Positions 1 to 6,838 of a stretch of DNA of 6,838 nucleotides are shown in pieces (the first letter of the stretch is position 1; each line of letters opens with the position of its first letter). The notes beneath the pieces were generated by a model, which made no database searches, had not been told where the DNA came from, and was given only the letters and a program-made list of their open reading frames with translations. The stretch spans positions 1 to 6,838 of the IMG/VR virus record IMGVR_UViG_3300024265_000604, one strand, 5' to 3'. Made by a program: the position numbers and the translations under genes.

Positions 1-699
1 TCATTCTTTTTTACCTTTTAATTCTATATAAACAAATGGTTCATAATTTAAATCAATTTCATTATCAAACATTTTCTTTTTAACAATATCATGAGTAATC
101 TTACCATTTAATAAAGGTTTGATTATATCTACTATTTCAATTACTCTTAATCTTAATCTTTTTGGATAATTTTTAAGAATTTTAAATTGTAAACCTTTCT
201 TTCTATGAGATTCTACTTTTTCATAAGTATTATATAATTTAAAGTATTTTTTTGCTTTATTATATGGTAATGTAAATTTACCATAAGTATTATTATTTAC
301 ATCATGAAAAACATAATTAAAATTATCTGAATTAAAGTTATTTCTATGTTGGCATTCAATAATAAAATTAGCTTGTTTTCTAAATCTTTTATCTATAGTT
401 GATAACATTGGAGTAGTTAAATAAATATCTGTAAAAGATTTTCTTGTATGAAATATTATACTTGATATATATTCATTTAGAGAACTTGAACTTACTCTTG
501 ATTCAATCCAAGAATAACCCTCATCCATTAGAATAACAATATTATCTTTAAGTTCAAATAAATCTGGAATACCTAATTCTCTATAGTTAGGAATATTAAT
601 TTTAAAATTACTCCAAATTTCTCTATTTTCCAATAAAATTAAAAGAAGCATAATTAATGTTTTACCACTTCCTAAATTACCTATTACTATAACTAACAT
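1..699 (-). CDS. Zot/inovirus pI-like P-loop ATPase (putative virion assembly/extrusion ATPase), 232 aa
   Basis: N-terminal strand plus Walker A GNLGSGKT, REIWSNF after the P-loop helix, Walker B IVILMDEG, and HTRKSFTDIYLTTPMLSTIDKRFR matching the Zot/pI pattern (RH/RK-x-x-x-D-h-h-h-h-T-[QP]...IDK-x-h-R). No TM segment evident. Confidence 0.85.
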   Translation of the reverse strand: MLVIVIGNLGSGKTLIMLLLILLENREIWSNFKINIPNYRELGIPDLFELKDNIVILMDEGYSWIESRVSSSSLNEYISSIIFHTRKSFTDIYLTTPMLSTIDKRFRKQANFIIECQHRNNFNSDNFNYVFHDVNNNTYGKFTLPYNKAKKYFKLYNTYEKVESHRKKGLQFKILKNYPKRLRLRVIEIVDIIKPLLNGKITHDIVKKKMFDNEIDLNYEPFVYIELKGKKE

Positions 700-703
700 A
701 GTA

Positions 704-1030
704 TTAATCTAATTTGGTATTAAAACTAATATTTTCATTTAAATTTTTATTATTTAAATTTGATATAGCAGAAATAATTTCCTTCCTTCCGTTTCTGTCT
801 TTACTAACCATATATTCCATAAATTTTCTAATATATGTAAATATTGTTTTTGCTGTAATTGGATAACCATCTTTTTTTAAACTTGTAGCTAACATAAATA
901 ATCCTGCTAATTGTCTTGGTCTTGGAATTTCTGTTTTTAATTCTAAATTTTTTTTACCACTCATAAGATTATTTAGAATTTGCTGAATAGAAACGTCATC
1001 ATTTTCTATTAAATCTTTAATTCCTTCCAT
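704..1030 (-). CDS. Hypothetical soluble helical protein, 108 aa, directly upstream of the ATPase
   Basis: Open frame with a TAATG stop/start overlap at 1030, a GGGGT SD-like motif upstream and a 4-nt gap to the ATPase. Contains the charged motif VSKDRNGRKEI. Confidence 0.8.
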   Translation of the reverse strand: MEGIKDLIENDDVSIQQILNNLMSGKKNLELKTEIPRPRQLAGLFMLATSLKKDGYPITAKTIFTYIRKFMEYMVSKDRNGRKEIISAISNLNNKNLNENISFNTKLD

Positions 1031-1410
1031 TATATAAACCCCATTACAATATAAGTACTAAACCCTCCAATTAATATACCAAATATTATATCCATCCAAT
1101 TTCTTTTAGGTTTGTCATTAAGATTTTTTGTAAAATCAACTATTACATGCTTATTAAGTATTAAATCTGTATATTTAGTATTAATTTTAGTTTTAATATC
1201 AATAAATAGTAGTAAATCTTTTGTAGAAATATCATAGCAATAATAATTATTTAAACCTTTTGAGTATGAATGCTGAGATATATCTATGATATAAGCATTA
1301 TCTTTAAAATTAACATTTTCAGTGGTGGATTTAATTCTTTTTCTAATTACTTCTGTATAAAAATTTCCATCTTTATTGTAGAATATAACTATATATTTTT
1401 TCTTAAACAT
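1030..1410 (-). CDS. Hypothetical protein with soluble beta-rich N-terminal domain and single C-terminal TM anchor, 126 aa
   Basis: Hydrophobic C-terminus IIFGILIGGFSTYIVMGFI. GAGGT SD-like motif at 1419-1423 (minus). 2-nt gap from the upstream gene. Confidence 0.8.
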   Translation of the reverse strand: MFKKKYIVIFYNKDGNFYTEVIRKRIKSTTENVNFKDNAYIIDISQHSYSKGLNNYYCYDISTKDLLLFIDIKTKINTKYTDLILNKHVIVDFTKNLNDKPKRNWMDIIFGILIGGFSTYIVMGFI

Positions 1411-1412
1411 TT

Positions 1413-1736
1413 TTATAAACCTCTTTTCTTTTTGAATCCTTCATAATAATCTAAACCAGCTATTAAAAATATAATAGATTGAAAAAAGATAAAAAATAAA
1501 CTAAAATATGGAGTAAATGGCATAAATGGATAAGTTAAACATATAAAACCTATTAATAATGAAAATAGGTAAGTAAGGATTAAGGGTAATATATCTTTAA
1601 CTTTCATATATAAATATAGCATTAAAATTATTAAAAAGAAAATTACAGAAATATGAGAAAATATTATACCAACATTTTCTATTTCTTGTCCCGCGTGAGT
1701 AGGGTCTGGAAAAGGGTCTACAGGTTGAAATATCAT
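1413..1736 (-). CDS. Small membrane protein with about 3 TM helices, 107 aa (putative minor virion protein)
   Basis: Three hydrophobic stretches and a basic C-tail (FKKKRGL). GGAGGT SD motif at 1749-1754 (minus). Confidence 0.8.
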   Translation of the reverse strand: MIFQPVDPFPDPTHAGQEIENVGIIFSHISVIFFLIILMLYLYMKVKDILPLILTYLFSLLIGFICLTYPFMPFTPYFSLFFIFFQSIIFLIAGLDYYEGFKKKRGL

Positions 1737-1739
1737 ATT

Positions 1740-2189
1740 TTATTCATTACCTCCAGTTAATTTTTTTATTACTCCTATAGAATAACCAAGTGTTAAACCT
1801 ATATATATAACACTTCCAAATATAGCAATTTCTATAATTAAACTAAATACAATTAAGGTTAAAGTTGTCCATAAACCTACATAAGCAGTTATCATAATAA
1901 TTACTTTTGCTGAATAAGGATTCAAACCAGACCCTAAAACCGAAATTCCTATTATACCTGCTACAACAGCTACAGTTATTATTAATGCTATTCCAGCATT
2001 TATTAAGACTGAAGTATCAATTTGAAATATTACATCTTGAGCTTCTACTAAAAAAGTAGTTGTATTACCATTAATTAATGAAACATTATCAACTTCTACA
2101 TTTATAGTATTAGAGATATAATCACTTCCTAATATAATACTAAATAAAGACAGAAAAACCATTACTAATATTGTTAAACTTATTAACAT
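1740..2189 (-). CDS. Membrane protein with about 4 TM helices and a probable glycosylated external loop, 149 aa (putative minor virion protein)
   Basis: N-terminal hydrophobic helix, an acidic loop with NVS and NTT sequons, then three further hydrophobic segments. GAGG SD-like motif in the end of the upstream gene. Confidence 0.8.
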   Translation of the reverse strand: MLISLTILVMVFLSLFSIILGSDYISNTINVEVDNVSLINGNTTTFLVEAQDVIFQIDTSVLINAGIALIITVAVVAGIIGISVLGSGLNPYSAKVIIMITAYVGLWTTLTLIVFSLIIEIAIFGSVIYIGLTLGYSIGVIKKLTGGNE

Positions 2190-2194
2190 TTTTA

Positions 2195-2425
2195 TTAGCC
2201 TCTACTTTTTTGAACATTATTTCCAATTATAAATATTAATACAATTAAACATAAAATTATACTCCATAATGGTAATAATGCTGACCATACACAAAAACCA
2301 CAAAATATAGTTAGCCAACAAAAGAAAGTTTCTATATCTTTATAAGTTAAATAGGTTAATGCTAAAGCCAAACCAAAAGTTATAGATAAACCTAATACTA
2401 TATTTGTAGGAGTTATAACAACCAT
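2195..2425 (-). CDS. Small 3-TM membrane protein, 76 aa (putative minor virion/tail protein)
   Basis: Almost wholly hydrophobic, with an LLPLW turn before the last helix. Starts 3 nt after the adhesin stop. Confidence 0.8.
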   Translation of the reverse strand: MVVITPTNIVLGLSITFGLALALTYLTYKDIETFFCWLTIFCGFCVWSALLPLWSIILCLIVLIFIIGNNVQKSRG

Positions 2426-2428
2426 TTA

Positions 2429-5374
2429 TTAAACCACTTCCTTTTTACTTTTAAAGAATACCATTATTATACTTGGAAATACAATAATAAAAAATAACCA
2501 ATATGGAATTAAAGTACTAATTGTTAATACAAGAGAAAATAATATAAATAAAGGTACTATTACTTGTTTTCCAAACCTACTTGAAAATAAAAATGTAGGT
2601 ACTAAAATAATAATTAATGGAATCATCATATTAAGTAATGATTCTGTAATAACACTAACATCTATATCTATAACATCTATTAATTCTACATTATAAATAT
2701 AACCAGAAGTTAAACCTGTTATTACATTATTATCCTTATCGGTTATTAATACTATTATATCTCTTACAGTATTGTCTTGAGATAAAAGAAATCTTGTAGT
2801 TGTAAGTGTATAAGGTATTGGAAGTATTTGAGAAATATCAGTATAATTAATTCTTATATAACCATAAGCATTATTATCCATATCAGACCTAAATGAAAAA
2901 GCATAATCAGAACTATTAACATCATTAATATTAAAAGTGGCTTGAATGTATTCTAAATTTGTATCGTCTGCTATATGTAAGAAATATAATCTATTATTAG
3001 AAACATAAAAATAACTGTCATCTATATCTACTCCAGAATGTTCAAACTCTAAATTATATTCTATAACACCTTGCTTTAATATAACTCCATCTATTTTGAA
3101 TGTAGAAATATTAAAATAATGATTTTGAAGAGTAAAAACAAAAGTAATATTAGCTATTGTTGTATCAGAATCATAGCCATTAATAGTATGAACTTCATTA
3201 TAATAATTTCTCATACTTCTGAATTCTGTCATTGACATACCAACAGTATAACTTCCTTCTACTAATCCAATATTAAAAGAACCATTAGCTTTTAAAAATA
3301 ATAAATTATTAATTTGAGTATTCCATGTTTGAGCAATATTATAAACAGCATAAGCCAATTCTGGAGTTTGAGAAATTCCATTATAATATACTCCAATATT
3401 ATCTATATTCCAATGTAAATCAGCATAATCGACAGAATGAACTAAAAGAGAAATCTTAGTTAATCCATTTTTTCCAGTGTAAAAGTTTGGTACTGTATAA
3501 GAATCATCATAAACTCCATCTATATAAAAATCAATGAAGGTTATATCTAATTCATAATTAATAAATACTACTACTCTATAAATTTTTCCAGTGGTAATAT
3601 CGTCTCTTACTTGTAAACCCCAAAAATCATCTACAGCTTGAAAAATATTCATAGAACCATTACTTCTAAAATCCAGCATTGCTATATAATTATCGTCTGA
3701 TGATTCTATTATTAAAGTGTGTGTACCGTTATTTCCAGTCATATCCATCATTTCAAACTCTATATCTACAGTAATAAAATTATCTGTAGAAGTAAAATCA
3801 TCATTAAGTATTCCTATTGTTTGAGCTAATCCATCTGTAGAAAGTTTATATACTCTGTCATCAGATTCATTAGGGTCTTGAATTATTATAGCTAATTCAT
3901 TTTCAACTCCAGTTTGCTCCCATCCTAAAGCTTCTTTAGTATTTACTGGAATTAAAGTATTTATACCACTTAAAGCAAATTCATATTTATCTACTTCTTT
4001 AAAACCAGTAATATTAAGATATGGAATAAGATTATCGCCAATTATATAACTTGGTAAATTATCGCCAAGATTATAATAAGGGTCTGCTATATTACCATAA
4101 TTGTCTAAGAACATAGAATTGACAGAATCGCCTTGAGCTTGAATGGTAAATGCGTCAATTCCATTACCTCCCATATTATCATGAGTAGCTTGATTATCAA
4201 CCTTTAAAACTAAATCTACATAAAAATCAAAAGTATTATCAGCCCTCCATGTAATTCTAATATGATAAAATATATCATTACTAACAGCTTGTATTAATTG
4301 CCAAACATCAAACTCATCTTGATATTCTAAATTACCACCGTCTATTTTAAGATAAACAATAATTCTACCAACCCCTTGATCTGCTATTGGCATATGCCAA
4401 TATTGATTAACCTCATTTGTTCCAAGATAATATTCAATTGTACCAGAAGTAGAAGGAGTAAAGTAATGAGATATAAGAGGGTCTTCTGCTGGAGTTATAT
4501 CATCTGTAAGATTAAAGACTTTAGTAAAAGAATCAAAATTAGGGCTTACAATACAATCTCCATCAAAAAGAATTGAACCAGAAACTATATTAGGTAAATC
4601 TCCAATATTTTGTTCAGTAAAAGTATAAGTAGCATTAATACCAGACCAAGAATAACCAATTGCGTCAAAATATATTTGGTAATTACCTGTAGAACCAGTT
4701 CTAATAAACAAACCTTCCAAATTATCTGCTACAGTTCTAAAATCAATACCAGAAAGAATTTGAATATTATCTAAATAAAAATCAAACAAATCAGAAGTAC
4801 AATTGAAAATTATTTTACTATGATACCATTTGTTAGAAATTACACTTATACCCGTATCTGTTAAATCCTCTCCATCATAATATTTAAACTTGCCAGATAT
4901 CGTAAGAATTGATATCATTGTATCAGTATCATTTTGTAAATAGAAAAGTACTGTCTTAGCTGAATCAGAAAAATACCACCACCACTCAACAATACCAGAA
5001 ACTATATTATCATCAAAAAAGTTAGTCATGTCTATATTTCCTGCTACACTATGATTCATAAGTATTACTTTAGAATGATTATCGAAATCACTAATTACAT
5101 TAAGATTACCCCCAGTTTCATCTATATTACTCCATCCTAAAGGAATAGTTCCATCTATATCATTTTCAAAACTATAAGTAGCATTATAATGACCAGAATA
5201 ATAACTTGAATTTTTAACATTAAAAGTATTGTCAAACTCATTTATAGTAGAATCAATTAAAACATTATCATCAAAAGTATAAGAAATATCTGTAGCTCCT
5301 TTAACAAAATTAGTAGGAAATAAAAATAAAGATAATATTAAAAATACACTTATTATTATATATTTTCTATTCAT
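2429..5374 (-). CDS. Large secreted, membrane-anchored glycoprotein with three ConA/LamG-like beta-sandwich repeats; putative receptor-binding adhesin/tail protein, 981 aa
   Basis: Signal peptide MNRKYIIISVFLILSLFLFP...VKG/A. Repeated motifs NKWYHSKIIF...FDFYLD / DIFYHIRITW...FDFYVD / KIYRVVVFI...IDFYIDG and YFDAIG / FLDNYG / NIDNIG. At least 15 N-X-S/T sequons counted by eye. Three C-terminal TM helices followed by KSKK. Confidence 0.82.
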   Translation of the reverse strand: MNRKYIIISVFLILSLFLFPTNFVKGATDISYTFDDNVLIDSTINEFDNTFNVKNSSYYSGHYNATYSFENDIDGTIPLGWSNIDETGGNLNVISDFDNHSKVILMNHSVAGNIDMTNFFDDNIVSGIVEWWWYFSDSAKTVLFYLQNDTDTMISILTISGKFKYYDGEDLTDTGISVISNKWYHSKIIFNCTSDLFDFYLDNIQILSGIDFRTVADNLEGLFIRTGSTGNYQIYFDAIGYSWSGINATYTFTEQNIGDLPNIVSGSILFDGDCIVSPNFDSFTKVFNLTDDITPAEDPLISHYFTPSTSGTIEYYLGTNEVNQYWHMPIADQGVGRIIVYLKIDGGNLEYQDEFDVWQLIQAVSNDIFYHIRITWRADNTFDFYVDLVLKVDNQATHDNMGGNGIDAFTIQAQGDSVNSMFLDNYGNIADPYYNLGDNLPSYIIGDNLIPYLNITGFKEVDKYEFALSGINTLIPVNTKEALGWEQTGVENELAIIIQDPNESDDRVYKLSTDGLAQTIGILNDDFTSTDNFITVDIEFEMMDMTGNNGTHTLIIESSDDNYIAMLDFRSNGSMNIFQAVDDFWGLQVRDDITTGKIYRVVVFINYELDITFIDFYIDGVYDDSYTVPNFYTGKNGLTKISLLVHSVDYADLHWNIDNIGVYYNGISQTPELAYAVYNIAQTWNTQINNLLFLKANGSFNIGLVEGSYTVGMSMTEFRSMRNYYNEVHTINGYDSDTTIANITFVFTLQNHYFNISTFKIDGVILKQGVIEYNLEFEHSGVDIDDSYFYVSNNRLYFLHIADDTNLEYIQATFNINDVNSSDYAFSFRSDMDNNAYGYIRINYTDISQILPIPYTLTTTRFLLSQDNTVRDIIVLITDKDNNVITGLTSGYIYNVELIDVIDIDVSVITESLLNMMIPLIIILVPTFLFSSRFGKQVIVPLFILFSLVLTISTLIPYWLFFIIVFPSIIMVFFKSKKEVV

Positions 5375-5541
5375 AATACAATACCAGATACAAGTGAAAT
5401 AATTAGCATTACTAAAGCAATTAATAATATTGACTTAATTAATAAATATAATTCTTTAAAAGTTTTGTCAATATCCTTTTGATTAGGTTCTATTTTCTTT
5501 TCCGGAATAATAATTAGTTCTTTCTTTTCTGTATCATCCAT
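5371..5541 (-). CDS. Small protein with charged N-terminus and C-terminal TM helix, 56 aa (not in ORF track)
   Basis: Manual translation: MDDTEKKELIIIPEKKIEPNQKDIDKTFKELYLLIKSILLIALVMLIISLVSGIVL*. Its TGA overlaps the adhesin ATG (ATGA, 5374-5371) and it fills the gap between MCP and adhesin. Confidence 0.78.
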   Translation of the reverse strand: MDDTEKKELIIIPEKKIEPNQKDIDKTFKELYLLIKSILLIALVMLIISLVSGIVL

Positions 5542-5558
5542 ATTTTTCAAACCAGTTC

Positions 5559-5583
5559 AAAATAAAATAAAAAAAATAAAAAA
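5559..5583 (-). terminator. Oligo-T archaeal-type terminator downstream of the capsid gene
   Basis: Minus strand reads TTTTTTATTTTTTTTATTTTATTTT, starting about 26 nt after the MCP stop, with no GC hairpin. Confidence 0.6.
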
Positions 5584-5609
5584 TGTGAAATCAGAGAATT
5601 AACGTATAA

Positions 5610-5852
5610 TTAGCTTGAACGTGCTTTAGGTAAAAACATCATAACTACGGAAATAATTGCTATAATAGGAAGTAAGGTGACCAAAAGTACTAAAACTGTA
5701 GGGTCAATAACGTCAGCCAGAGTATCGCCAGATGTGGCATTTACAATTACATTTCCCGCATTACCAATTAATCCGAGAGCTATAGGGAAAATTACAGCTA
5801 TAATAATTAATGCGACAGCTAAAGTTATAACCTTTCTATATGATTCAGCCAT
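5610..5852 (-). CDS. Putative major capsid protein of spindle-shaped archaeal virus type (two hydrophobic helices, hairpin), 80 aa
   Basis: MAESYRK-VITLAVALIIIAVIFPIALGLIG-loop with NAT sequon-DPTVLVLLVTLLPIIAIISVVMMFL-PKARSS. Each helix has an internal proline, as in SSV1 VP1 (recalled as IGIVLLPVI...TLLNLVPLFYIL), and the tail is basic. First gene of the operon, followed by a terminator. ATG at 5852 is preferred over the TTG at 5861 used by the track. Confidence 0.78.
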   Translation of the reverse strand: MAESYRKVITLAVALIIIAVIFPIALGLIGNAGNVIVNATSGDTLADVIDPTVLVLLVTLLPIIAIISVVMMFLPKARSS

Positions 5853-5884
5853 TTTTATCAAAAAATCTTTTTTTTATGAAAAAT

Positions 5885-5936
5885 TTTATAAATTTAGTTA
5901 TAAATAGTAATGTTTGTTCACTTTTAAGGTTTTTGG
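5885..5936 (-). promoter_or_regulatory. Candidate archaeal promoter(s) for the structural operon
   Basis: Minus strand has CCAAAAAC-CTTAAAAG (BRE-like plus TATA-like, 5936-5921) and a second candidate TTTATAAA at 5892-5885. The AT-rich background prevents choosing between them. Confidence 0.4.
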
Positions 5937-5963
5937 TTGAAAATATTTCATATTTTTCTTTAC

Positions 5964-6012
5964 TACTAAAGAATTTATAATTATACTAAAGAATTGATAA
6001 TTATACTAAAGA
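5964..6012. repeat. 20-bp tandem direct repeat, about 2.5 copies
   Basis: TACTAAAGAATTTATAATTA (5964-5983), TACTAAAGAATTGATAATTA (5984-6003), TACTAAAGA (6004-6012). One mismatch between the full copies. Confidence 0.9.
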
Positions 6013-6020
6013 TTTAAATA
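6007..6020 (+). promoter_or_regulatory. Archaeal TATA box with purine-rich upstream element for the small-gene arm (probably leaderless mRNA)
   Basis: TAAAGA-TTTAAATA. The box at 6013-6020 is centred about 26 nt upstream of ATG 6043, the usual archaeal TATA-to-start spacing, and that ATG has no SD. Confidence 0.6.
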
Positions 6021-6042
6021 GTAGTTATTCCTTTATTTAATT

Positions 6043-6195
6043 ATGACACATTTAAAAATGAATGCTTTTGAAAAAGATGATATAATTACTAAATTAAATA
6101 AAATTTATTTAAATTCTAAGAACTTAAATAAAACAGATATTAAAGCTATAATCAGAGTTATGGATATAGTTCTTAATAAAATAGAAAATAAGTGA
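6043..6195 (+). CDS. Small hypothetical helical protein, 50 aa (not in ORF track)
   Basis: Manual translation: MTHLKMNAFEKDDIITKLNKIYLNSKNLNKTDIKAIIRVMDIVLNKIENK*. Positioned correctly behind a TATA box. Alternative start at ATG 6058. Confidence 0.65.
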   Translation: MTHLKMNAFEKDDIITKLNKIYLNSKNLNKTDIKAIIRVMDIVLNKIENK

Positions 6196-6201
6196 ATAAA
6201 A

Positions 6202-6351
6202 ATGGCAACAAGAATAATAGAATGGAAAAATGCTGACAAAACTGAATATGAAATTATGAAATGGATATACAATTATAATAAACATGAAGTTTATAGATAT
6301 TTTAGAAATTCAGCGGGAATAATAACTAAGGATAAAATAGGAAGTTTATAA
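6202..6351 (+). CDS. Small hypothetical protein, 49 aa (not in ORF track)
   Basis: Manual translation: MATRIIEWKNADKTEYEIMKWIYNYNKHEVYRYFRNSAGIITKDKIGSL*. Preceded by AAGTGAATAA (6190-6199), 6 nt after the previous stop. Confidence 0.68.
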   Translation: MATRIIEWKNADKTEYEIMKWIYNYNKHEVYRYFRNSAGIITKDKIGSL

Positions 6352-6376
6352 ATTAACCAAAAGTGAATAATTATGA
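6351..6376 (+). repeat. Repeated gene-leader element, copy 1 (contains GTGA SD-like motif and start codon)
   Basis: AATTAACCAAAAGTGAA-TAATTATGA, identical to 6636-6662 except for a 1-nt indel. Confidence 0.85.
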
Positions 6377-6603
6377 GATTGATTGAAAAAAATATTAAAG
6401 AAATGAAAACAAAACGATATGGAGTAAAAACATTATTAATTTTTAAAAGTAATTCTAATTTTCATGGTTTTATTGAATATACAGCTACAAGAAAAATGCC
6501 TAATGGTAAGGTTTTTAGAGTAGATAAAGCAATATATAATCAAAATGGCAATCATATAGCTTATTATCCAAAAACAAAACCAATGTTTAATACTAAGTTT
6601 TAA
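6373..6603 (+). CDS. Small basic beta-rich hypothetical protein, 76 aa
   Basis: ORF track. ATG lies within the repeated leader and a T-tract follows the stop. Lys/Arg-rich, no recognised family. Confidence 0.72.
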   Translation: MRLIEKNIKEMKTKRYGVKTLLIFKSNSNFHGFIEYTATRKMPNGKVFRVDKAIYNQNGNHIAYYPKTKPMFNTKF

Positions 6604-6614
6604 TTTTTCTTTTT
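6604..6614 (+). terminator. Candidate oligo-T terminator
   Basis: TTTTTCTTTTT immediately after the TAA of 6373-6603. Confidence 0.45.
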
Positions 6615-6635
6615 GAAAGTTAATTAGATAAACCT

Positions 6636-6662
6636 AATTAACCAAAAGTGAAATAATTATGA
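6636..6662 (+). repeat. Repeated gene-leader element, copy 2
   Basis: AATTAACCAAAAGTGAAATAATTATGA, containing the ATG at 6659. Confidence 0.85.
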
Positions 6663-6838
6663 TTGAGAAAATTGTTAAAGTATTAATATTAATTACATAT
6701 TTAATATTATCAATTCTTTCTATATTAGAAATAATATTTTTTAGTAAGTTTTATTGTATCATATTTCAAATTACAATAATAACTCCATGTTTTATATTTC
6801 TGTATATAGCATTTAGTATGATTAATATAACAGATTGA
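6659..6838 (+). CDS. Small 2-TM membrane protein, 59 aa (not in ORF track)
   Basis: Manual translation: MIEKIVKVLILITYLILSILSILEIIFFSKFYCIIFQITIITPCFIFLYIAFSMINITD*. Starts in leader copy 2 and ends with TGA at the last base of the window. Confidence 0.65.
   Translation: MIEKIVKVLILITYLILSILSILEIIFFSKFYCIIFQITIITPCFIFLYIAFSMINITD

Follow-up and report, generated by a model that had tools for sequence, protein, structure and literature searches.

We analyzed a 6,838-bp stretch of DNA, the IMG/VR uncultivated viral genome (UViG) record 3300024265_000604 (the window, by which we mean the whole stretch), and found that it is an exact piece of a published virus genome. Very probably, the window represents the morphogenetic half of the linear double-stranded DNA genome of WyrdV7, an uncultured virus of the spindle type that has been published and assigned to Asgard archaea (Lokiarchaeia/Promethearchaeota), with an extrusion-type assembly mechanism. 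The minus strand of the window carries a module that leads from a predicted major capsid protein (MCP) belonging to the His1 VP21 family, through a large adhesin and a block of five small genes, to a predicted ATPase of the pI/Zot family.

The window was retrieved with its ATPase protein. An exact-protein look-up with the 80-aa MCP found the 15,316-bp JGI contig Ga0209976_10001236 (L003; metagenome 3300024265) and near-identical contigs in three other assemblies, giving four assemblies or samples in all. Positions 6878–13715 of L003 are the reverse complement of the window, as an exact sub-string. According to the preprint 'Viruses of Asgard archaea' (bioRxiv 10.1101/2021.07.29.453957), Ga0209976_10001236 is WyrdV7, a likely linear, nearly complete genome, whose protein-primed DNA polymerase of family B (pPolB) is closest to that of a thaumarchaeal spindle virus. 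Table S5 of the same preprint gives _00043 as an AAA+ ATPase related to filamentous-phage pI (HHsearch 99.79% to Pf3 ORF301), _00049 as the adhesin, _00051 as a His1-like MCP (HHsearch 99.42%) and _00056 as pPolB, and leaves _00044 to _00048 without annotation. Wyrdviruses, for which family rank is proposed, are set apart there by the combination of MCP, adhesin, five conserved block genes and a pI-like ATPase that has no membrane domain, and an extrusion-like, non-lytic assembly is proposed for them. The family traits include one or two His1-like MCPs of about 80 aa with paired hydrophobic helices, and a receptor-binding adhesin gene that follows the MCP gene downstream. The window belongs to one of these named genomes, as an exact sub-string of the WyrdV7 contig. 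Because that contig is published and annotated, the module in the window has already been described. The published version of the preprint is reportedly Medvedeva et al. 2022, Nature Microbiology, 'Three families of Asgard archaeal viruses identified in metagenome-assembled genomes'. A first-pass annotation, made from the sequence alone, had likened the capsid protein, adhesin and ATPase of the window to those of wyrdviruses, and the window is indeed a wyrdvirus morphogenetic module; its further suggestion of a possibly undescribed lineage falls away, as the window is an exact piece of Ga0209976_10001236, published as WyrdV7.

The IMG/VR record covers 45% of the parent contig, the polymerase arm and the right-hand small genes being missing from it. 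The window ends at the ATPase stop codon because the record was trimmed at a gene boundary. Past the ATPase, the parent contig continues with six more small genes on the same strand; there is a 4-nt overlap between the first of these and the ATPase stop. In addition, the parent contig carries the pPolB gene and an imperfect inverted repeat (79 nt, 83.5% identity, E 1.7e-17) located about 200 nt inside each end (L003 1–800 versus 14517–15316). A nearly complete linear genome fits these inverted repeats near the ends and the fact that L003 and a second contig, L004, which are independent assemblies, end at the same right-hand base. The whole-window repeat search found no terminal repeats, as expected because the window is an internal fragment, and a tRNA scan of the window found none. 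A megablast search of GenBank phage records with the whole window gave no match; WyrdV1, the only wyrdvirus deposited there, was reached by tblastn. The IMG/VR wyrdvirus records 3300024265_000604, _000605, _000607, _000608 and 3300027822_000124 are pieces of 6.7–10.5 kb, and four different wyrdviruses among the IMG/VR records come from a single sediment metagenome.

Gene order and conservation of the module

The features of the window, in the order of transcription of the module and with the basis of each assignment, are as follows (hydropathy labels are from a Kyte-Doolittle scan).

5610–5852, minus strand: MCP, 80 aa from ATG (83 aa from an upstream TTG); open reading frame (ORF)
5542–5609, minus strand: 68-nt spacer with T6, T8, T4 and T4 runs, predicted archaeal oligo-T terminator/attenuator; sequence
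5371–5541, minus strand: 56-aa protein with a charged N-terminal half and one C-terminal membrane helix; ORF, hydropathy
2429–5374, minus strand: adhesin, 981 aa; ORF, AlphaFold2 model, homology
2195–2425, minus strand: 76-aa integral membrane protein, block gene 1; ORF, similarity, hydropathy
1740–2189, minus strand: 149-aa integral membrane protein, block gene 2; ORF, similarity, hydropathy
1413–1736, minus strand: 107-aa integral membrane protein with about three helices, block gene 3; ORF, similarity, hydropathy
1030–1410, minus strand: 126-aa tail-anchored protein (soluble N-domain, C-terminal membrane helix), block gene 4; ORF, similarity, hydropathy
704–1030, minus strand: 108-aa soluble protein, block gene 5; ORF, similarity
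1–699, minus strand: predicted pI/Zot-family P-loop ATPase, 232 aa; Pfam, PHROG, PDB profile, fold
5853–6042, no strand: divergent intergenic (putative promoter) region between the MCP operon and small plus-strand genes; sequence, regulatory role inferred
6043–6838, plus strand: four small divergent genes of 50, 49, 76 and 59 aa (the 59-aa product strongly hydrophobic); ORFs

The module is tightly packed. Successive gaps from the MCP gene to the ATPase gene are 68, −4, 3, 5, 3, 2, −1 and 4 nt, and the coding share of positions 1–5852 is 98.5%. With a window G+C content of 24%, a random codon on the minus strand is a stop with a probability of 0.092, and chance would give fewer than 0.03 ORFs of at least 107 codons in the window. 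The ORFs of 56, 76 and 80 codons are within chance on length alone; we accept them because their position, size and membrane-helix pattern are kept in five other loci. Specifically, we compared six wyrdvirus loci, those of the window (WyrdV7), WyrdV1 (L007, MZ666939), L002, L010, L011 and L012, and the MCP, the protein of about 56 aa, the adhesin, the five small genes and the ATPase follow one another in the same order in all six. This layout agrees with the nine co-directional genes of the first-pass annotation, the last eight overlapping or at most 5 nt apart (minus strand; gaps of −4 to +5 nt), and the Kyte-Doolittle scan reproduces its topology labels. Its 'complete operon' stands for the conserved MCP-to-ATPase module, but the co-directional string continues past the window edge with the six further genes.

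On the parent contig, the four plus-strand genes separate the module from the polymerase gene; they are outside the morphogenetic module and gave only sub-threshold noise against Pfam and PHROG. A 20-nt tandem repeat (2.7 copies, 91% matches) at 5964–6016, in the divergent intergenic region upstream of the MCP gene, has the highest Tandem Repeats Finder (TRF) score of the window, 92. It may be a site at which a regulator binds, and it calls to mind the direct repeats of SSV1 promoters.

Capsid protein, ATPase and adhesin

The ATG start of the MCP gene is backed by homologues that start at 'MA'. The hydropathy profile of the MCP shows hydrophobic segments at residues 2–38 and 43–79, with a short loop between them that contains a conserved N-x-T sequon. 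Its close relatives form 69 clusters, 53–100% identical and all about 80 aa long, which share invariant prolines, the loop sequon N-A-T and 'LLPIIAII' in the second helix. The window MCP alone reaches the Pfam family His1_capsid at a sub-threshold level (E 0.37–0.89), and a shallow profile of its close relatives (A1; effective number of sequences (Neff) 2) aligns to His1 VP21 with an hhalign probability of 11%. A profile search of 1.84 billion representatives recovered 104 relatives of the MCP, and the profile of a 67-member alignment drawn from them (A3) aligns to VP21 with a probability of 87% (E 3.9e-6, 61 columns). Furthermore, 11 of the 67 A3 members match His1_capsid (best 9.7e-7), and no other family recurs. 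On the strength of these profile comparisons, we assign the 80-aa protein to the His1 VP21 capsid family, and the two-helix capsid protein of spindle-virus type proposed in the first-pass annotation is of the His1 kind.

Of the other capsid proteins with which a match had been envisaged, neither SSV1 VP1 nor the SMV1 capsid was reached. Comparison of the MCP with SSV1 VP1 and VP3 gave hhalign probabilities of 4–10%, with no homology detected, and the MCP profiles found nothing meaningful among PDB sequences, the solved SSV19 and SMV1 capsid proteins included. Distant homology to VP1/VP3 is still likely, because lower-scoring matches with deeper profiles are reported in bioRxiv 10.1101/2021.07.29.453957. 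A pilin family is not recurrent among the relatives: Pilin_N was found in one of 30 at E 0.23, and in none of the 67 A3 members at E ≤ 0.01. In the Pfam scans of its relatives, the 80-aa protein thus resembles neither a pilin nor a cellular membrane family.

The MCP gene is set off from the rest of the module by the spacer at 5542–5609. T-runs of 6–11 follow the (last) MCP gene in all six wyrdvirus loci, and the T fraction of the spacers is 0.54–0.73, versus 0.34–0.40 overall. This base composition suggests that the spacer acts as a putative archaeal oligo-T terminator or attenuator, which could set the stoichiometry of the capsid protein to the minor proteins. We found no mention of the element in the accessible parts of the WyrdV7 preprint.

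At the other end of the module, the 232-aa ATPase matches Pfam Zot (PF05707) with 30.1 bits (gathering cut-off 20.3), and the PHROG families Zot-like (1.3e-9) and morphogenesis (protein I of M13; 1.1e-5). A profile of its 34-member family has only one significant match among PDB sequences, 2r2a (7.6e-9). Its AlphaFold2 model has a mean predicted local distance difference test (pLDDT) score of 92.5, and the best fold match of the model is likewise 2R2A, a Zot-family N-domain (E 7e-9, TM-score 0.63 on the target). Walker A residues G7–T14, D59–E60, R68, K87, D103 and R105 are invariant in the 34 relatives, and the protein is 43% identical to the WyrdV1 ATPase. The pI/Zot-like ATPase of the first-pass annotation is therefore recovered by Pfam, by PHROG and by the match to 2R2A.

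The ATPase shows no hydrophobic segment beyond the β1/Walker A strand, and hence no membrane helix. In the model, residues of about 165–232 form a C-terminal soluble helical domain, and a Pfam search with the C-terminal 73 residues at E ≤ 10 returned nothing usable. The N-terminal P-loop NTPase domain is common to the window ATPase and the pI/Zot proteins of filamentous phages (Tubulavirales, PF05707), whereas phage pI has a transmembrane helix and a secretin-contacting periplasmic C-terminal domain that are both missing from the window ATPase. Unlike filamentous-phage pI/Zot, the window ATPase also has no secretin partner and is placed in an archaeon with a single membrane. Sequence and predicted structure place the 232-aa protein in the pI/Zot assembly-ATPase family, without the membrane and periplasmic part of phage pI. 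Nothing suggests a toxin activity, the name of the Zot family being historical.

An alternative role for the ATPase in the same virus is that of a replication-initiation or DNA-packaging motor (DnaA-like or FtsK/HerA-like), with the five small proteins serving as virion or membrane-remodelling proteins. Such a role would accord with the C-terminal helical domain found in place of a membrane anchor, and with the next-ranking fold matches of the model, which are the STIV/STIV2 B204 packaging ATPase and then generic AAA+/RecA/FtsK folds. It would also accord with the RefSeq name 'DnaA-like replication initiation protein' carried by SSV1 B251 and His1 ORF16, to the second of which the ATPase family aligns with an hhalign probability of 84.5% (B251, 30%, weak). 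We regard a mainly replicative or packaging role as unlikely, because the match to pI/Zot is specific and the position of the gene, last in the structural module, is fixed across all loci, while replication genes vary or are swapped. Both the only significant sequence matches and the best fold match of the ATPase are to the pI/Zot family, the published HHsearch match to Pf3 ORF301 included, and WyrdV7 encodes a protein-primed polymerase, for which no DnaA-type initiator is needed.

The adhesin has a signal-like N-terminus, 17 N-x-S/T sequons and C-terminal helices by sequence and hydropathy. Its AlphaFold2 model (pLDDT 81.6) is all-beta from residue ~30 to ~900, followed by three helices at 904–979. 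The fold matches of the model are laminin LG, galectin and sialidase carbohydrate-binding module (CBM) domains and many phage LamG-type tail proteins, and Pfam families among the relatives include Sialidase-like_CBM (8/24) and Laminin_G_3 (3/24). The protein is 27% identical to the WyrdV1 adhesin over its full length (E 1e-67). The model thus portrays the 981-aa protein as a multi-domain surface protein with tandem lectin-like (ConA/LamG-type) beta-sandwiches and a C-terminal membrane anchor, consistent with the large adhesin named in the first-pass annotation. Sialidases (propeller plus CBM) are also among the fold matches of the model, which is all-beta with matches of the lectin/LamG type.

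The N-terminal modules of the adhesin (residues ~52–245 and 248–440) are 26–41% identical to repeated modules of proteins that NCBI names as Promethearchaeota. This resemblance suggests that adhesin lectin modules have been exchanged between the virus and Asgard host surface proteins. The nearest named relatives of the modules are chromosomal Promethearchaeota proteins, a tie that indirectly supports an Asgard host for WyrdV7. The two modules correspond to window positions 4055–5221 and carry the signature 'Y.ATY.FEND..G..P..W ... Y.DA.GYSW'. Three or four copies of such modules occur in chromosomal proteins of Promethearchaeota, an S8 peptidase among them, and one such gene (L015:10001-13633) adjoins genes for a Ras/Roc GTPase and ribosomal protein eS30.

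The sharing of lectin-like modules with chromosomal Asgard proteins, together with the fact that most module proteins have no annotated family, could also point away from a virus, to a cellular locus (surface or secretion) or a plasmid, for example a pilus-like or vesicle-forming system. We consider this extremely improbable. The MCP family has no consistent pilin match, near-identical copies of the locus occur in the four assemblies or samples, and no match was found in 185,579 representative genomes. In addition, all loci lie on contigs of at most 15–29 kb with tiny genes, pPolB and terminal repeats. Pilin, chromosomal-locus and plasmid readings were rejected on the lack of a recurrent pilin family and on these small virus-like contigs, and the protein-primed polymerase on them speaks against a core chromosomal locus with no mobility.

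Small module proteins and related viruses

Each of the five block proteins has significant similarity to its syntenic WyrdV1 counterpart (E 1e-6 to 1e-20), and all were aligned across the six loci; against Pfam and PHROG they gave only sub-threshold noise. The 76-aa protein is 51% identical to the syntenic 80-aa protein of WyrdV1 (E 1e-14). The 149-aa protein, which has an N-terminal helix and 2–3 further helices by hydropathy, shares 42–57% identity with its syntenic counterparts in WyrdV1 and L002. The 108-aa protein is 40–42% identical to its syntenic counterparts, with a conserved region 'YMVS..R..R.E.I.A' and no hydrophobic segment. The WyrdV1 counterpart of the 126-aa protein is annotated 'conserved fusellovirus protein B277', in line with the HHsearch probability of 90.9% to B277 given for it in bioRxiv 10.1101/2021.07.29.453957. 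Our six-sequence profile of the 126-aa protein aligns weakly to SSV1 B277 (hhalign probability 29%, E 5.9e-4), with the equivalent pre-anchor and anchor regions paired. Ahead of the adhesin, a gene for 50–59 aa with the architecture of the 56-aa protein stands at the same position in the six loci; its sequence is barely conserved, and the 56-aa protein has no detectable similarity to the 57-aa protein of WyrdV1.

WyrdV1 is a described relative with a GenBank record. Its gene order (MCP, 57 aa, adhesin of 973 aa, proteins of 80, 131, 100, 145 and 106 aa, ATPase of 231 aa) is that of the window, and eight of the nine window proteins are significantly similar to WyrdV1 proteins (27–51% identity). 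WyrdV1 differs from WyrdV7 in that it carries two paralogous MCP genes and lacks a polymerase gene. The GenBank taxonomy line of MZ666939 (L007) puts WyrdV1 under Fuselloviridae. We find this placement unsupported, because the MCP is closer to that of His1, the relatives are linear with pPolB, and no integrase family is on record.

His1 virus (Halspiviridae, Salterprovirus) and WyrdV7 have in common the MCP family (VP21) and a linear genome with protein-primed PolB and inverted terminal repeats. His1 ORF16 is distantly related to the window ATPase; it is encoded on the opposite strand, away from the structural genes. The host of His1 is a halophilic euryarchaeon. BLASTP of the nine window proteins against the 14 His1 proteins gave nothing significant except the MCP (E 0.026), and beyond MCP, polymerase and ATPase, the gene content of Halspiviridae is not detectably common to the window module.

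The first-pass annotation had also drawn a parallel between the 981/76/149-aa run and SSV1 C792 (VP4)/B78/C166. The gene order of SSV1 is C792, B78, C166, (B115, VP1), VP3, VP2, A82, C84, B277, C102/A153, B251. The parallel with C792 (the end filament), B78 and C166 is upheld in order, size and hydropathy, and not in homology: the hhalign probabilities for the adhesin, the 76-aa and the 149-aa protein are 7%, 0.7% and 0.2%, obtained with shallow profiles (6–24 sequences versus a single sequence). Similarly, the 126-, 108- and 232-aa proteins parallel B277, A153 and B251 in size and hydropathy, B251 also lacking a membrane helix, and profile comparison of the 108- and 126-aa proteins with A153/C102 detected no homology. 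SSV1 differs from WyrdV7 in being circular and integrase-encoding, with its MCP genes between the two parallel blocks. The parent contig departs from the circular genome with a tyrosine integrase typical of Fuselloviridae, having pPolB and imperfect terminal inverted repeats, and only pPolB and Zot are on record as Pfam families for its called genes, with no integrase among them. The resemblance to SSV1 is therefore architectural, homology being unproven with these shallow profiles.

A further point of comparison is the spindle-type virus NMV3 of the Asgard archaeon Nerearchaeum marumarumayae, with His1-like MCPs and an AAA+ ATPase similar to filamentous-phage assembly proteins (bioRxiv 10.64898/2026.08.12.739948). 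NMV3, which by description is like WyrdV7 in the kind of its MCP and ATPase, has been linked to spindle-shaped particles on Asgard cells (bioRxiv 10.64898/2026.08.12.739948). This link bears on the possibility that the module builds a pleomorphic, vesicle-like enveloped particle of the pleolipovirus type instead of a spindle. In having a small membrane protein, a large C-terminally anchored spike, several proteins with multiple helices and an NTPase, the module does resemble the pleolipovirus core, bioRxiv 10.1101/2021.07.29.453957 likens the plasticity of the replication module to that of Pleolipoviridae, and no wyrdvirus particle is known to have been imaged. We nevertheless judge a pleolipovirus-type particle to be very improbable, given that the 80-aa protein matches the His1 capsid family specifically and that the same pair of MCP and ATPase is found in NMV3. 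The general Pfam and PHROG scans gave no pleolipovirus match, no comparison aimed at pleolipovirus proteins having been made.

Over 7,650 nt, between the divergent promoter region and the right genome end, the contig L004 (ENA ERZ27251120 k141_1363840) shares 99.96% identity with WyrdV7. The left arm of L004 has diverged: its PolB C-terminus is only 67% identical in amino acids, its small genes differ, and it holds two extra genes, of 221 and 247 aa, with sub-threshold matches to a methyltransferase and a glycosyltransferase. The junction with L003 lies at window position ~6048, in the divergent promoter region. Either wyrdviruses recombined very recently to give L004, or the contig is an assembly chimera. 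In L004, the four plus-strand ORFs of the window are swapped for unrelated small ORFs. Another virus-like contig, L013 (ENA ERZ936117, 29.4 kb), encodes a 42%-identical ATPase and a 1,410-aa Laminin_G_3 adhesin. Nine different genes (including those for proteins of 419 and 467 aa) replace the five-gene block there, and L013 possibly represents a separate, larger relative of wyrdviruses.

Proposed assembly of the WyrdV7 particle

The composition of the module suggests the following course of assembly. The MCP would insert into the host cytoplasmic membrane as a helical hairpin, its loop sequon probably being glycosylated. The oligo-T element after the MCP gene would attenuate read-through, and the MCP would be made in excess because transcription into the downstream genes is reduced at the spacer. 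The adhesin and the small membrane proteins of 56, 76, 149 and 107 aa may gather in the membrane as a tip or assembly platform, to which the cytosolic ATPase would probably be tethered via the tail-anchored, B277-like 126-aa protein, the soluble 108-aa protein, or both. ATP hydrolysis would then drive the co-assembly of viral DNA with the membrane-embedded MCP, and the particle would be released through the membrane without lysis, in a manner analogous to pI-driven extrusion of filamentous phages. Finally, the lectin-like domains of the adhesin may attach the particle to the next host cell, with a glycan or the surface layer as receptor.

Several points weigh against this account, in addition to the packaging-type fold matches of the ATPase and the RefSeq names of its archaeal virus relatives. 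To our knowledge, wyrdvirus particles, hosts and proteins have not been the subject of experiments. The spindle shape, the non-lytic release and the extrusion role of the ATPase are inferred from homology, and the roles of the five block proteins from topology and position. The ATPase-profile and MCP-profile scans of the 185,579 representative genomes gave no confirmed match, and hence no provirus or host contig was seen. In the accessible parts of bioRxiv 10.1101/2021.07.29.453957 and its supplements, a CRISPR spacer match to a host is found only for WyrdV1.

The absence of a membrane helix from the ATPase leaves room for a more specific, tentative proposal, in which the membrane half of pI is supplied in trans. 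The 126-aa protein, perhaps with the 108-aa protein, would dock the ATPase, and the trio represented in SSV1 by B277, A153/C102 and B251 would be an extrusion core common to wyrdviruses and fuselloviruses. We hold this to be a rather unlikely possibility.

Our analysis adds no new entity, and it independently confirms the published annotations by structure prediction and a 1.8-billion-protein profile search. What it adds are the conserved terminator-like spacer, the link between the adhesin and host modules, the 20-nt tandem repeat and the recombinant sibling contig L004. Wyrdviruses tie the assembly of spindle virions to the pI-type extrusion ATPase of filamentous phages, a connection in print since 2021–2022 from this very contig. 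If the split-pI trio is real, the egress of spindle viruses would be mechanistically, and perhaps evolutionarily, continuous with the extrusion of inoviruses.

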